A DNA stretch of 64,000 nt from Macrostomum lignano. Taxonomy: Eukaryota. The DNA is taken from positions 62,001 through 126,000 of the forward strand of contig NIVC01000387.1 in NCBI GenBank assembly GCA_002269645.1, written 5' to 3'. Every line of letters starts with the position of its first letter. Within the stretch, counting starts at the first letter, position 1. Below, piece by piece: positions 6,001-12,000 of this stretch. The position numbers were made by a program, and so were the translations under genes. The notes under the pieces are model-generated. The model saw only the letters and a program-made list of their open reading frames with translations. It had not been told where the DNA came from and did not search any database.

Positions 6001-9000
6001 ACTGGCTTGGGGCAGCTCATTTAGACCATGGCAGAATCCGCAAAGCGCTCCAGTCTCCTCACAAAAGTAAGGCATATCTATGCTGCAAAAGTCAGCACAT
6101 TTTTCTTGCTGCTTTTTTTATTCAAGCCCATGGGGCTACACAGCAGCGAGCTCGAGCGGTTTATAATAAGCAAAGACCAAACCGTACGCAGAAGTTGTGA
6201 GCCGCAGCAGCCACTATCTTGATATATATATGTATGAATATGTGTACACAAATGAATACTTTACACAATACGGCATGTTAATGCATGTTTGCGCATGCAG
6301 AAAAAATTTATTATGATATTTTAGCAGCTAGCACTCCCTGTCAGCCAAGGCCAGTCACTGATTAATTTCTGCTTGCGCGCAGAGAGGCGCAATAGGTGTT
6401 GGGGCTCCTCTTGTAGCGTGCAACCCGTGTGTTACTCCTTATTCCAGGCAGCACAATGTCTGTATATTTATATATAATACTATGTGCTATATTGCTAGCC
6501 CAGTATTTAAAGCCCCATGTTTTTTAAGTATGCAAATGGAAGAACGCCAACCTCATTTAGCCCCCCTCCTTTTTCAGCAAAAAAGCATTGAAAAGCAGAC
6601 AGGCCAGTATAGCCTATAAAGCATATATATCACATTTGTATCCTAGCAACCGAATAGCAAAGTGACTCTAGGCAACTTGTAAATAATAACCTCTCATATG
6701 TGCTCAGGCCAGCCAAGACTCGTTCATTTCTCTATTTTCCTCTCTCCATTCCAAAACTCCCAGAGCAGCTGGCAGCGACATCAACTCGCACTCTCGCCTC
6801 CTCATTCAGCATCTGTATACAGGCCTGTTTCATTTTAGTCCCAGGATTATTATTGGGCTATAACTGGTCTCAGACTAGGCTTATTCATGCAGCCTGCTTG
6901 TGTGCTCAACTATGAGGGTAGAAAAAATAAACGCAAGATATGAATCAGCCTCTGCCATCTAATGGAAAACAATAATGCACAGTGGAGCGGCAGGTGGAGG
7001 GGAACAGCAGTCGCTGCCGTGCACACCCACCGACAGAAGCAGAGAAAGCAGAGCCGCGCGCAACCATACTGTAAAAGCAGCGTAATTTCTTGTGAAGAGA
7101 CGATACCAGCTTTAGGCCTGACGCATCGAGTGTGATTTGAACAGCCAAAGCGAACCCAGCGATCTTTGGGAGGGCGAAGCAGGGCTTAGCTAAAAAGAAG
7201 AAGGGAGCAGTAACCATAACAACAAGATCGGTAGGCCCAGCATATTTACAGTTTAGACGAATGGGGGCGGAGGTTGCGGAGGTCCGGAGGGGTGGGGGAG
7301 AGGAAGGAGAGAGTGGGGAGAGGCGAGGTTGGGCGGCTGCGCACTACACGTGAAATAAAGTTGACACAGAACATAGCAATACATGAGTTATATCAGTATA
7401 GCAGGGGCACAGGACAGACGAAAGGAACGCGGCCTTATAACTAAGACAGCCGCCCCTCCCCTTCCATTTAAATATACTTACCCGCCCTCCCAGCCGTACT
7501 GCATTTCGTCCCCCTCCCCCTACGAGAGACGCCATCCAATTCAGGGTTTATGAGAAAAATCGCTTGTTGGATATAAAAATATAAAGCCAACTATTGAAGG
7601 CATTGCTTACAGGCCGGCCGAGAAGGCGCTCTCCATCCCGTCCCACTCCTCAGCCTGCCATCCCCAGCCTCCGCTCGCATTAATAGCGCACCCAGCTGGG
7701 CAAACTGTCCAGAAAATCTTCCTATCTTCGCATTGGATTATTTATAAAGACTTTCTCAATCTTTGACTAAAACTGCAATTCAATCTGCAACAGCGAAGCC
7801 TTCAAGGTCAAGCATGAGCCATCAGCAGCTGCACTGCCACGGCAAGCGGAGCAGGAAGTCCGCCTGTCCGAAGCGCATTCTGCAGCATCAGCAGCAGCTG
7901 GCGGACACAAAGGTGAGACTCATTGACACCTTTAGAACAACGCGTCATGTCGTTGCCCACTATTTAGCAAATAGACCGTGCTGGGGCTGCATAGGTTCTG
8001 GTGAACCGAGATGTCTTCATTCACTTCTGCCTCCCTCCCTCTAACTTTGGGAGATCGGGAAAGGGAGGGGATATTCGCTCCCCAGGCATTGTACACGGGG
8101 CAGGGATGCGCAGTGTTGAAGTAGATTAAACGCAGTCATGACTGATTATGTGTGTTTTTGAACTGCTACTCTCTCGAACACGCCTGATGCCTGTCCCAGG
8201 CGAGTGGGGCTGCGAAGGCTTTGGGAGCCCGGCCATCCCGGGCCAGGGACTCTCCCGATGTGCGCAGTTCCCCCAGCCTGTGTTACACAGTAATCCCACT
8301 GCAGCCCAACTGCTTTCCCTTCTTCTCTCCCCCTTTCTCCCTTATTTTTTTCAATCCTCCTTTTCTTGTCCTCGTGTGCATAATAATTTTCACGAAATGC
8401 GCGTGACGAGGCATTGCGTGGCCGGCCTTTTCGTCGCTAACACACACACAGAGAATATCCGACTGTAATGTGGATACTAGGCGCTGAATGTAGCCAAACG
8501 CAGCCAGATACACAAGCAGCGCTCAGGAGTAGCGGGGGGGGGGCGCGAATCCCCGCTGACTGACATAGCCAAAGCAGGAGAATTAAGAAGCGCGCACAGC
8601 AGAGATCCTCATTCTGCCTCCCTCTAGCTGTCTCCTCTCTAATCCCTTACCCAGCAGTTTTTATTCGAAACTTGATTACAATATGCAAAAGAAGCGGAAC
8701 AAGTCGGGGAAAAATTAAAAATTGAAACACCGAACAAGCAGACAGGCCCGGACAAAGAAAGCAGGAGAGGGAATGAAACAGCCGGGATTGCAGGCCAACT
8801 AAATTTCTAGAGCAGGAAAGCAGGGGGGGGGGGGGGCTATTTGCTTTATCAATAGCTGCCTTGGGGAGCATTTAGCCAGCTACAAATAGAAACATATATA
8901 ATCATTGCATTCTGCACACTGAGCGAAGGCCAATACAGAAATTTCCATTCTGCATCGCTGGAGGCGATCCTGCACTTTCAACAGTTTATAATAAGTTAAA

Positions 9001-12000
9001 TTGAAAAAGCTCTCCAACCAGCGGATACTGTGCCACATACAATATATAGCTCTATATGCCTCACATAGCGGAATCTATGTATAGATAATTAAGTAAATAA
9101 TTCTGCAGCCGAGGTGGCGCAGTATATAAATATGCAGATAAAGCATGCATAACAGAGCAAATGCATTTGCGGCCGCATTTGCGTGCAACTTAATAACAGT
9201 ATAGTGGATTTGGATCACGTGACAGCCCAACTTGCACTGGAGTTAGCGGGATCTGCGCTGCACACTTAACTTCAGAACCAATTTTCGAAGCAGGGAAACA
9301 AAATTGCCGGGATAATTCGCATCTTGCATAGCAGCAAAGCTAAATCCAGAAGCAATTAGTAAAGCAGACAAGAAGCCACCGCTTATTGAATATGCCAGCA
9401 ATTACCAGAAAAATTGGTAATCGCCAATTGCGGCCTCAAAGAGCGGCTCTGCAAACAAGAATTCCTAATGAAGCACAAAGGAATAGCAACAGAAATCCAC
9501 CTGGAAAACTTTTTTTGATGTCCCGGCGAACAAAAAGGGAAAAAACTGTACCGAACTTGGAACTCGAGCCTCGCGGCAAGTTCGATAAGTTTCGATGAAT
9601 CTGCCTCTAAAGACAAGAGGCTGCGGTGAAAACTCGCTGTGACACTTTTGATTACAGTTTTAAGAGTCCGCACAAAAATAACCCGCTCAAGTTCTATGCG
9701 GCGCTTAAGCATTAGAGAAATCAAGGACCCATCAATTCCACAAGCGCGCCTCAGGTGGCACTAGTACAGGTATGGTTTGTCTATGAGATAGGCATCCGCC
9801 GCATCCATAGGCGGCAGCCCAGCAACTGGTATCTGGGAGGGTGGCTGCCCAACAACTGGGGAGCTGGGAGGGTAGACCTTAGATGCCTTTTAATGACTCC
9901 AGCACTCCAACTCGCGCCCGCAGACAGCAGCAGGAGCAGCCTGCACAAAAACAAGCTCGAGCTACGAGAAACGACCGCGCCGTGACCCATCGCCGGCCTC
10001 CGCTCCTCACCCGCCACCGCCACTGCTTCCGCTCTTCCCTACTCTGCCGGGATTTCCGCCACAGTCGCTGCCAACGAAATCTGAGGACGCCGGAGCGGAG
10101 CTGCTGCGCAGCCTGGCCGCCCTCAACCCACAGCTCATCATCCCCACCCTCTACGCGACCCTCGGCAGCGGCAGCAGTAGCGGAGGCGGCATATTCGGAT
10201 TAGGCGGCAGCCATGGCAACACAAACGACAGCAGCAACGGAGATGGCGAAGCCGCCAGACTGCGCGGCCGGACGAAGGGTGGCACTGAATCTGCTGGTGC
10301 AGCAACGCAATTTAAGCAACACCAGCCGCAGCACCAGCCGCAACACCAGCCGCAGCACCAGCCGCAACACCAGCCGCAGCACCAGCCTCAGCAGCGCCGC
10401 GGGCCGCGCCCGTTTGATCCACAGGCAACGCCGGAGCCGGTGCGCATCATCACCCGCAAAGGCGTCGCCTACAACAGGCGGCCGCGGTCGTTCTACAGCT
10501 CCGAGATTAAACTGGCCGTTATCGAGTTTGCTGAGCAGCACGGCGCATCGGCGGCAGAGCGGCACTTTAAAGTGCCACTGAGCACAGTGCAGAGTTGGAT
10601 GCGGCACGACAACAAAGCCCGGATACTGCGGGCACCGCCCTCTCTGCCGCCACCCCCGCCGCAGCCTCCGCAGCCTGCGCCATCTCCGCAGCCGCAGCTC
10701 CCGCCGCTGCCGCTCAATCTGTCGTTTCCACAGCTCGGCCGCATATCGTTGCCTAGCAACCGCCACAGAGGTGAATTTCAGCAAATTCTGCACTAAGAAT
10801 CGATCAACAGAGGAGAGAAGTGCTCTTTGACAAAGTGTTTTCAGGCTTGCCCCGCTATTCTGTAATTACCATCAGAAGCCGCCACATCCCATGCCAATAA
10901 TTCCGCAACCACAAATATAGACAGCGGAAGCCCGCCCAGATGAGGCGGAAATGCAATATAAAAAGACTTGTCCCAACTCCGCCGCACGCCCCTTCGCTCC
11001 CTGTACAGCATGCGGGAGGAGGGCGCTGCATTTGCTGCTTCAAATGTTTTTCAAACAAGCAACAAAAGCAATAATTGTTGCCGGGGCGGGCCGGGGACGA
11101 CACGGCTGCGCTGCTTTTGTCTGCTTTTTTGACTGCTGTGCTCGCGCCACTCCACCGAGATGTGCAGTCTGCAATGCCCCGCACTTGCAAATACAAATTC
11201 AATTTAAAGTCTGCAATTCAGCCTAAATTTTTGGCCCTAAAATTATTTTTGATTATCTATTTTCCTTTCAATTTTTTCTGTTGCATTAAAGATGAATGAA
11301 ATTGAATACTGTTGGATAGGAGTAAGAAGGCAGCAGGACCAGATGCCCAGTTTAATTAATGAAAATTGTGCATAATTAATTTGCCAGCCCCTGTCCCGCA
11401 TACCTCGCTACAAATCTCTGATTGCAGCCCCCATGCGCGCAGGTAATTAACCAGAGAGCTTCCAATTCCCTAATTAACACCTATTCAATAGGAACATTGA
11501 AAACAGACTGACTGACAGGTTTGCGAGCCCCGCCTCTTCGATGCCCCCAAGTGCCCCATGAATCAGTCATGCCAACTGGCAGGCAAGGCCTCATCAGGAG
11601 CTACTGAAAAATTACATAATTACGGTTCGTAAAAGATGAAAATAACCGGTATTTGTTTAACCTACTACTGAAAGCAGCCAGAGTGGTATTGCCCAGCAAG
11701 CCATGCAACAAGCGGCCCGGCCAGCCGCCCTCATCATTACCATCGTCACTGCCGACAAGTGACGCAGCCGACACTGCGGCCAGGCTGCTCTTCCTGCGCA
11801 GCTGGTGAGACGCCAGCAGCTCTGCCGGATCGGGGCGCCGCTTTCTATTTACCGCTAATGAGCTTGAGTCAGTGTGGCTTTGACACTGGCAACTGGGGAG
11901 CTGAGTCAGTGTGGCTTTGACAATGGCAACTGGGGAGCTGAGTCAGTGTGGCTTTGACAATGGCAACTGGGGAGCTGAGTCAGTGTGGCTTTGACAATGG

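Follow-up and report, generated by a model that had tools for sequence, protein, structure and literature searches.

We identified a helix-turn-helix (HTH) domain of pogo/IS630-transposase type in an open reading frame (ORF) of the flatworm Macrostomum lignano. The ORF lies at 9924-10796 on the plus strand of a 64,000-nucleotide stretch (referred to as the window), antisense to a minus-strand gene of the DOCK6/7/8 type. It is secure that a solo HTH, BrkDBD-like at the family level, is present in a long, predicted disordered and lineage-restricted ORF within an intron of a DOCK-C gene. The locus may further be a real, lineage-specific gene for a transposase-derived DNA-binding protein. We favor this explanation tentatively, at a little short of an even chance, and consider it only slightly likelier than a non-functional relic.

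By sequence comparison the HTH at 10485-10604 is genuine, with similarity to known domains far beyond chance. An exhaustive phmmer search, in which 81 residues around the HTH were compared with 1.84 billion representative proteins, returned 175 proteins at E<=1e-3, 36 of them at E<=1e-10. Most are pogo-type modules of BrkDBD or CENP-B_N (with HTH_Tnp_Tc5) from molluscs, fish and a copepod, among them proteins of the oyster Magallana gigas, the clam Ruditapes philippinarum and the sardine; the remainder include bacterial proteins with four HTHs. Whole-protein scores are inflated because most matched proteins hold several HTH copies, and single-domain scores are 20-35 bits. The top single-domain relative is a bacterial protein of four HTHs and ~200 residues (35.5 bits, 40% identity over 50 residues). 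In the matched proteins Pfam identified BrkDBD, CENP-B_N, HTH_28 and HTH_psq, often alternating with HTH_Tnp_Tc5. Such a pairing of BrkDBD or CENP-B_N with HTH_Tnp_Tc5 makes up the two-part region through which pogo-type transposases bind DNA. Of 46 aligned single domains, 19 passed E<=0.01 for HTH_28, 14 for BrkDBD and eight for CENP-B_N. A profile built from the relatives' alignment found one full-length match in the PDB, the DNA-binding domain of Brinker (2GLO, E=7e-6). The original prediction, made from the sequence alone, had placed the HTH in the BrkDBD group shared with pogo and POGK. This placement is supported by the BrkDBD, CENP-B_N and psq-like HTHs of the relatives and by the profile match to 2GLO; Passer-type pogo transposases and POGK themselves combine BrkDBD with HTH_Tnp_Tc5, and pogo families occur in Platyhelminthes (PMC7386202).

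Pfam recognized no family above threshold in the ORF sequence, and no HTH_psq profile match was identified there. Scores for the isolated 80 residues were all sub-threshold: 15.7 bits for HTH_Tnp_IS630, 14.6 for HTH_28 and 13.9 for BrkDBD (cut-off 23.4; E=0.05). The lack of an HTH profile match had been named beforehand as a reason to abandon the prediction. For Pfam such a match is indeed lacking, and the domain was rescued only by the exhaustive search and its 175 relatives. All positions of the family consensus (Y..x..K..V.EFA..HG..AA.R.F.VP.STV..W) are retained, with no stop codon or frameshift. Apart from the same locus, no relative of more than ~53% identity to the HTH was found among the 1.84 billion representatives, which, to the extent that annotated proteins reveal it, speaks against recent activity of the family. 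The only near-identical match is P0059, a 780-residue UniRef model without a start codon that runs along the plus strand across window 2-14050. A test with simulated decay, in which the HTH was scored on a profile made from its matches, was dropped as circular because the profile members had been chosen by their similarity to the query.

Structure prediction is consistent with the assignment. Given the relatives' alignment, AlphaFold predicted three helices, with 33 residues at a predicted local distance difference test (pLDDT) of >=90. In single-sequence mode the HTH alone is confidently predicted, and 205 of the 290 exon 2 residues have pLDDT<50. A Foldseek search of the PDB, for which the domain is too short, gave no significant match. 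Its ranking, which is only suggestive, is headed by HTHs of psq/CENP-B type (2ELH from Drosophila Dan, 2COB from human LCoR and 1HLV from CENP-B).

Translation confirms the 291-codon open exon opposite DOCK that had been predicted, including its HTH string. The frame from 9924 to 10796 consists of 290 codons and a TAA (10794-10796), its sole stop, and the full stop-to-stop frame around it extends over 9897-10793. The predicted phase-compatible upstream exon is also present: 7814-7912 joins 9924 in phase 0 through GT-AG borders, with the acceptor CCCGCAG/A at 9923/9924. The spliced model of exons 1 and 2 has 323 codons, and its HTH occupies residues ~221-260, in the C-terminal half. In transposases the HTH is at the very N-terminus, whereas here it begins 560 nucleotides inside the open frame. 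Exon 2 contains no in-frame ATG ahead of the methionine of SWMR (10599-10601), directly past the HTH core. The depth of the HTH in the frame and the lack of an upstream in-frame ATG in exon 2 fit a host-type ORF that needs exon 1. The features of the ORF are as follows.

7814-7912 (+): putative exon 1; ATG with A at -3, 33 codons (99 nucleotides, phase 0), basic stretch resembling a nuclear localization signal, donor AAG/GTGAGA (sequence read, ORF list)
7913-9923 (+): putative intron, GT...AG, 2011 nucleotides (sequence read)
9924-10796 (+): putative exon 2; 290 codons and TAA, mostly low-complexity, predicted disordered (translation, AlphaFold)
10177-10557 (+): in-frame GT...AG "intron" of P0059, which drops 127 codons including (QHQP)n and the first half of the HTH (P0059 mapped to the window)
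10316-10393 (+): in-frame microsatellite coding for (QHQP)n (Tandem Repeats Finder; period 12 with 6.5 copies, period 24 with 3.0 copies, 100% match)
10485-10604 (+): helix-turn-helix, three-helix, pogo/IS630-transposase type (BrkDBD/CENP-B_N-like), with predicted helices at about 10500-10631 (phmmer, AlphaFold)
10635-10709 (+): proline-rich tail, pLDDT below 50 (translation, AlphaFold)
10710-10724 (+): PLNLS pentapeptide, candidate CtBP-binding short linear motif (regular expression; residue 296 of the 323-residue model)
10770-10772 (+): alternative donor G/GTGAAT, chosen by P0059 instead of the TAA at 10794-10796

The ORF was predicted to be nested in a repeat-rich DOCK intron, and it is. 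The flanking and upstream minus-strand exons match DOCK, and therefore the plus-strand ORF is antisense within an intron of ~8 kilobases (kb) of a DOCK6/7/8-type gene, at about 5.4-13.35 kb of the window. A Pfam scan of the flanking exons gave no match, and a PDB sequence search was needed for their identification. In that search human DOCK6 (PDB 9vm2; E=1.8e-16) matched the minus-strand exons at ~13.5-13.9 kb with residues 1109-1191 and at 2-457 with residues 1412-1499. Minus-strand exons from 27294 down to 20606, which are N-terminal, match a UniRef fragment of M. lignano annotated as a "C2 DOCK-type domain-containing protein". An annotated gene for 2088 residues on a near-identical sister contig has the Pfam domains DOCK_C-D_N, DOCK-C2 (DHR-1), TPR_DOCK9 and DHR-2. 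On these domains and the flanking exons we assign the host to the DOCK-C (DOCK6/7/8, Zir-type) genes. The exon at 4921-5373 had no database match of its own. An Rfam scan of window 5-14 kb identified nothing. The borders of the intron and its main repeat are as follows.

13529-13960 (-): host DOCK-C exon on the upstream side of the intron, in DOCK orientation (match to human DOCK6 residues 1109-1191)
4921-5373 (-): host DOCK exon on the downstream side, with a Ser-rich linker first (ORF; assigned by its position between matched exons and by our reading)
11860-13309 (no strand): 37-nucleotide minisatellite, 39 copies with 99% matches, which fills most of the remaining intron

Contigs NIVC01000225.1 and NIVC01003856.1 (GCA_002269645.1), which belong to the annotated M. 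lignano assembly Mlig_3_7 (PMC5730564), carry two of the window's intronless alpha-tubulin ORFs without a changed residue. These contigs are 95-98.6% identical to the window, rather than identical, and thus the window is a third copy, or another assembly, of one locus. The M. lignano genome is neopolyploid, with 180 Mb of duplicated blocks >=95% identical (PMC5730564).

P0059 consists of plus-strand exons at 2-673, 4985-5260, 5699-5830, 7757-7912, 9924-10176, 10558-10770, 11677-11823 and 13351-14050, and most of it mirrors coding exons of DOCK. A few of its residues differ from those of the window, so it comes from another copy or assembly. The model uses the junction 7912/9924 and exits through the donor at 10770. 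It is probably an annotation artefact, an antisense over-prediction, and is evidence of a predictor's liking for these splice sites rather than of translation of the HTH. The gene had been described as easily missed. P0059 already uses these exons, yet it splices out half of the HTH, so the description is only half correct. Exact look-ups of eight candidate products (the spliced 323-residue protein, a P0059-like isoform, an unspliced exon 1, a GTG-start protein of 118 residues and overlapping ORFs on both strands among them) found none on record, although absence from the tables is not proof.

As had been claimed, hallmarks of a transposon were not found at the locus. In the ORF there is no Pfam match to HTH_Tnp_Tc5 or DDE_1. 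A tblastn search of the 64 kb with all retrieved relatives (150+), the DDE content of which was uncertain and was not checked, identified only one HTH (10440-10625) and neither a Tc5 HTH nor another transposase remnant. No terminal inverted repeats (TIRs) or credible inverted repeats were identified around the locus (6500-12500), nor were TA-flanked ends found at it. A homologue search with the whole ORF was swamped by low-complexity words and gave a single irrelevant match. With a query cleaned of repeats nothing was returned, P0059 included; the index may lack models of this species.

The Pro-rich stretch followed by PLNLS is exactly where it was predicted, at 10710-10724. The pentapeptide fits the ELM pattern for CtBP binding and lies downstream of the HTH in the predicted disordered tail. 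It is a five-residue match in a Pro/Leu-rich tail, chosen post hoc among many possible repressor motifs. In composition-preserving protein shuffles P.[DN]LS arose by chance at a frequency of 1.8%, against 9% for the ELM pattern. No Groucho-type motif (FKPY, WRPW or eh1-like) is present in the translation. As a possible CtBP-binding site, PLNLS is a lead rather than evidence, and a short-motif match of this kind cannot alone carry a functional claim.

The gene that we tentatively propose would be a two-exon ORF of 323 codons, restricted to the Macrostomum lineage and antisense in the DOCK6/7/8-type intron. The likeliest origin of its HTH is capture from a pogo-like transposase's N-terminus, with loss of the Tc5 HTH (the second one) and of the DDE domain. 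If expressed, the product would be nuclear and largely disordered and would bind DNA through its single HTH, and its disordered arms, possibly including PLNLS, would contact partners. The undecayed HTH, with its strong homology and a fold that single-sequence prediction already gives confidently, argues for such a gene, as do the well-formed exon 1 (A at -3, strong donor, right phase), the junction shared by P0059, and the lack of transposon hallmarks and of close transposase relatives in our searches. Codon usage adds to this. We scored the six frames with a log-odds table trained on about 3,300 codons from confident genes of the window, and the proposed frame ranked first of six in exon 1, in the N-terminal part, in the HTH and in the whole exon. 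The level of its score resembles that of a disordered exon in a real neighboring gene for a phosphatase (0.05); exons of the tubulin, cyclophilin, radial-spoke and UBA5 genes score 0.3-0.6.

Several results weigh against a functional gene, and most of them are also what would be expected of a non-functional relic. Such a relic would be a stranded 5' piece, derived either from a pogo-like transposon or from a multi-module gene with pogo DNA-binding domains; its frame would be open by virtue of a C/G-rich, T-poor composition, with exon 1 and PLNLS coincidental and the gene predictors attracted to them. The region of the ORF (900 nucleotides) is 38% C and 13.6% T. Because T is so rare, and because 2.4% of dinucleotide-preserving shuffles hold an equally long open frame, openness is weak evidence and exceeds chance only weakly. 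Several other frames on both strands are nearly open: 221 codons run without a stop on the opposite strand, and only two stops interrupt a second plus-strand frame. On a rough estimate, it is not unusual for 2 kb of upstream sequence to hold by chance an ATG exon of compatible phase and with a good donor, and PLNLS is found in 2-9% of shuffles. Codon scores are low in absolute terms: exon 1 and the HTH reach 0.15-0.17, and the overall value is about 0. The 85% of the ORF outside the HTH is orphan low-complexity sequence, and no orthologue was found either by phmmer among the 1.84 billion representatives or with the cleaned query. P0059 breaks the HTH by removing 10177-10557. No protein with the complete HTH of the locus, or of its >=95%-identical duplicates, was identified in a collection of 15 billion proteins that includes the GenBank annotation of Mlig_3_7. 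That annotation is transcript-guided (PMC5730564), and the lack in it of a coding sequence with the HTH is mild evidence against robust expression, no more. An intron packed with minisatellites and the known occurrence of pogo families in this phylum (PMC7386202) also suit a relic. However, decay of the HTH would be expected of a relic and is absent, and no Tc5 or DDE remnant, TIRs or TA-flanked ends were found. Nor was a close transposase relative seen, though such proteins could be missing from proteomes because of repeat masking, and the HTH lies deep within the ORF and not behind a start codon. On balance we regard a relic as a serious contender, clearly short of an even chance.

Other explanations are less probable than either a lineage-specific gene or a relic. 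The segment could belong, as an exon, to a longer plus-strand transcript (coding or non-coding) antisense to DOCK over the whole region, as in P0059, which joins eight plus-strand segments over window 2-14050. Most P0059 exons, however, mirror DOCK exons or are low-complexity, as is typical of antisense over-prediction; the model lacks a start codon, splices through the sole recognizable domain and has no entry in the gene-position table. We consider a longer transcript of this kind unlikely. There is a slightly smaller chance of a Macrostomum-specific transcription factor with one captured pogo HTH and new disordered arms, in which CtBP is recruited through PLNLS and there is mutual interference or co-regulation between the nested gene and its DOCK-C host. 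The original prediction had also allowed for a true Brinker-like repressor, and an orthologue of Brinker, or a Brinker-like repressor of the bone morphogenetic protein (BMP) pathway that recruits CtBP, would agree with the match of the relatives' profile to 2GLO, with the sub-threshold BrkDBD match and with PLNLS in a disordered tail downstream of the HTH. This part of the prediction does not stand. The BrkDBD score is well under the Pfam cut-off (13.9 against 23.4 bits) and no better than those for HTH_Tnp_IS630 or HTH_28. Pogo-type modules and bacterial proteins, not Brinker, are closest to the HTH, and the best single-domain match is among the bacterial ones. The HTH lies in the C-terminal half rather than at the N-terminus, and there is neither a Groucho motif nor a 3R-like region. 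The host is a flatworm, and to our knowledge Brinker is known only from insects; no orthologue was found in the searches. A Brinker-type repressor is thus very improbable, and whichever explanation of the locus holds, it has no bearing on Brinker/BMP biology.

If the lineage-specific gene is expressed and conserved, it would represent a clean and young case in which a pogo transposase was domesticated through its first HTH only, in a regenerating flatworm for which transgenesis and RNA interference are available. Were a repressor role also true, the gene would be a young, minimal case of a transposase DNA-binding domain turned repressor without a DDE domain. If the locus is instead a relic, it is a caution that long frames and phase-compatible "exons" arise readily in a T-poor, minisatellite-rich genome.

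Other features of the window include three intronless alpha-tubulin genes within 7.5 kb, at 28393-29757 (+), 32306-33673 (-) and 34472-35839 (+). They have 80-86% mutual DNA identity and an unusual N-terminal loop (…GMMLAG.. KCD…), and only two are annotated on NIVC01003856.1. Pfam identified neighboring genes for an inositol-phosphatase-type Exo_endo_phos2 protein, a cyclophilin, a radial spoke head protein and a ThiF/UBA5-like E1, with coordinates listed as 40313-43125 (-), 49096-49626 (-), 55303-56799 (-) and 61496-63115 (+). The UBA5-like coding region is broken by a (CTGT)n tract (61981-62275) that is open in frame throughout. An ORF at 53028-53671 (-) encodes a CCHC zinc-knuckle (CPAYGKTCNNCGRTNHFSSVC) typical of retrotransposon Gag, with no Pfam match at E<=1e-3. 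Minisatellites of 20-49 nucleotides and (GACA)n tracts are very dense throughout window 1-64000, and many are inside introns of DOCK and its neighbors (examples are at 1901-4452, 11860-13309, 17168-18865, 22134-22720 and 36912-37782). In several frames these tandem repeats give rise to long spurious ORFs, some reaching 591 codons, and their abundance agrees with the tandem-repeat share of 15% that has been reported for M. lignano. AT-rich islands, with a guanine-plus-cytosine (GC) content of 31-33%, are present between genes at 26001-28000, 44001-46000 and 58001-60000; the window is otherwise ~50% GC.

Two groups of HTH relatives have features of their own. The bacterial proteins form a cluster (P0007; metagenome loci L003-L005) of ~200 residues with four tandem BrkDBD/HTH_28-like HTHs, and their genes are conserved beside those for signal peptidase I, RNase III, LigA (NAD-ligase) and a YifB-like protein. 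Large metazoan proteins (P0002-P0005, of which P0003 is from Magallana gigas; P0015 from Ruditapes; and the fish zinc-finger proteins P0010 and P0037) carry 4-10 tandem modules of a BrkDBD-like HTH and HTH_Tnp_Tc5, some fused to C2H2 zinc-finger arrays. Pfam scans of P0002-P0005 listed no DDE domain. These multi-module proteins look as though pogo DNA-binding regions had been domesticated or amplified repeatedly.

Among known systems, the window HTH belongs to the same family as the HTHs of pogo transposases, whether of the Passer (BrkDBD with HTH_Tnp_Tc5) or Tigger/pogoR type (CENP-B_N with HTH_Tnp_Tc5), and its predicted three-helix fold is alike. The same holds, at the level of HTH family, for proteins with multiple pogo DNA-binding modules (Magallana gigas A0A8W8HXK3, Ruditapes XP_060573092.1 and Sardina XP_062395903.1). 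Pogo-type domains are 36-53% identical to the window HTH per domain and have in common with it the pattern Y..K..V.EFA..HG..AA..F.VP.STV..W. Unlike pogo transposases, the locus has one HTH, located in a long disordered ORF and not N-terminal, and no HTH_Tnp_Tc5, DDE_1 or TIRs were found. As it stands the locus is not a member of a transposon family, because no Tc5 HTH, DDE domain or TIRs were found. The bacterial four-HTH proteins provide the best single-domain match, but they are prokaryotic, have four repeats and are without disordered arms.

The Drosophila Brinker DNA-binding domain (2GLO, PF09607) is of the same broad HTH family at the profile level, and both sequences have a CtBP-type pentapeptide downstream. 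In contrast to Brinker, the window HTH lacks the insertion between helices 1 and 2, is sub-threshold for the family, has another position in the protein and comes from another phylum, and the predicted product has no Groucho motif. The locus is not of the Brinker family, because the profile score is sub-threshold, the layout and the phylum are wrong and no orthology was found. The domesticated pogo genes POGK, TIGD1-7, JRK and CENP-B have a transposase-derived HTH, a feature in common with the M. lignano locus, which may be a host gene too. Vertebrate domesticated pogo genes all keep the DDE domain, with Ka/Ks of 0.05-0.2 across many species (PMC7386202); no DDE domain was found at the M. lignano locus.

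The corepressors LCoR and Eip93F (E93) have a psq-type HTH and PxDLS motifs for CtBP, and in LCoR these motifs are N-terminal to the HTH. The order is reversed at the M. lignano locus, where there is also no HTH_psq profile match and no sequence relationship to LCoR or E93. LCoR (2COB) was nevertheless among the top, non-significant structural matches, and with a small HTH and a CtBP-type motif in a disordered protein, LCoR and E93 are the nearest architectural analogy to the predicted product.

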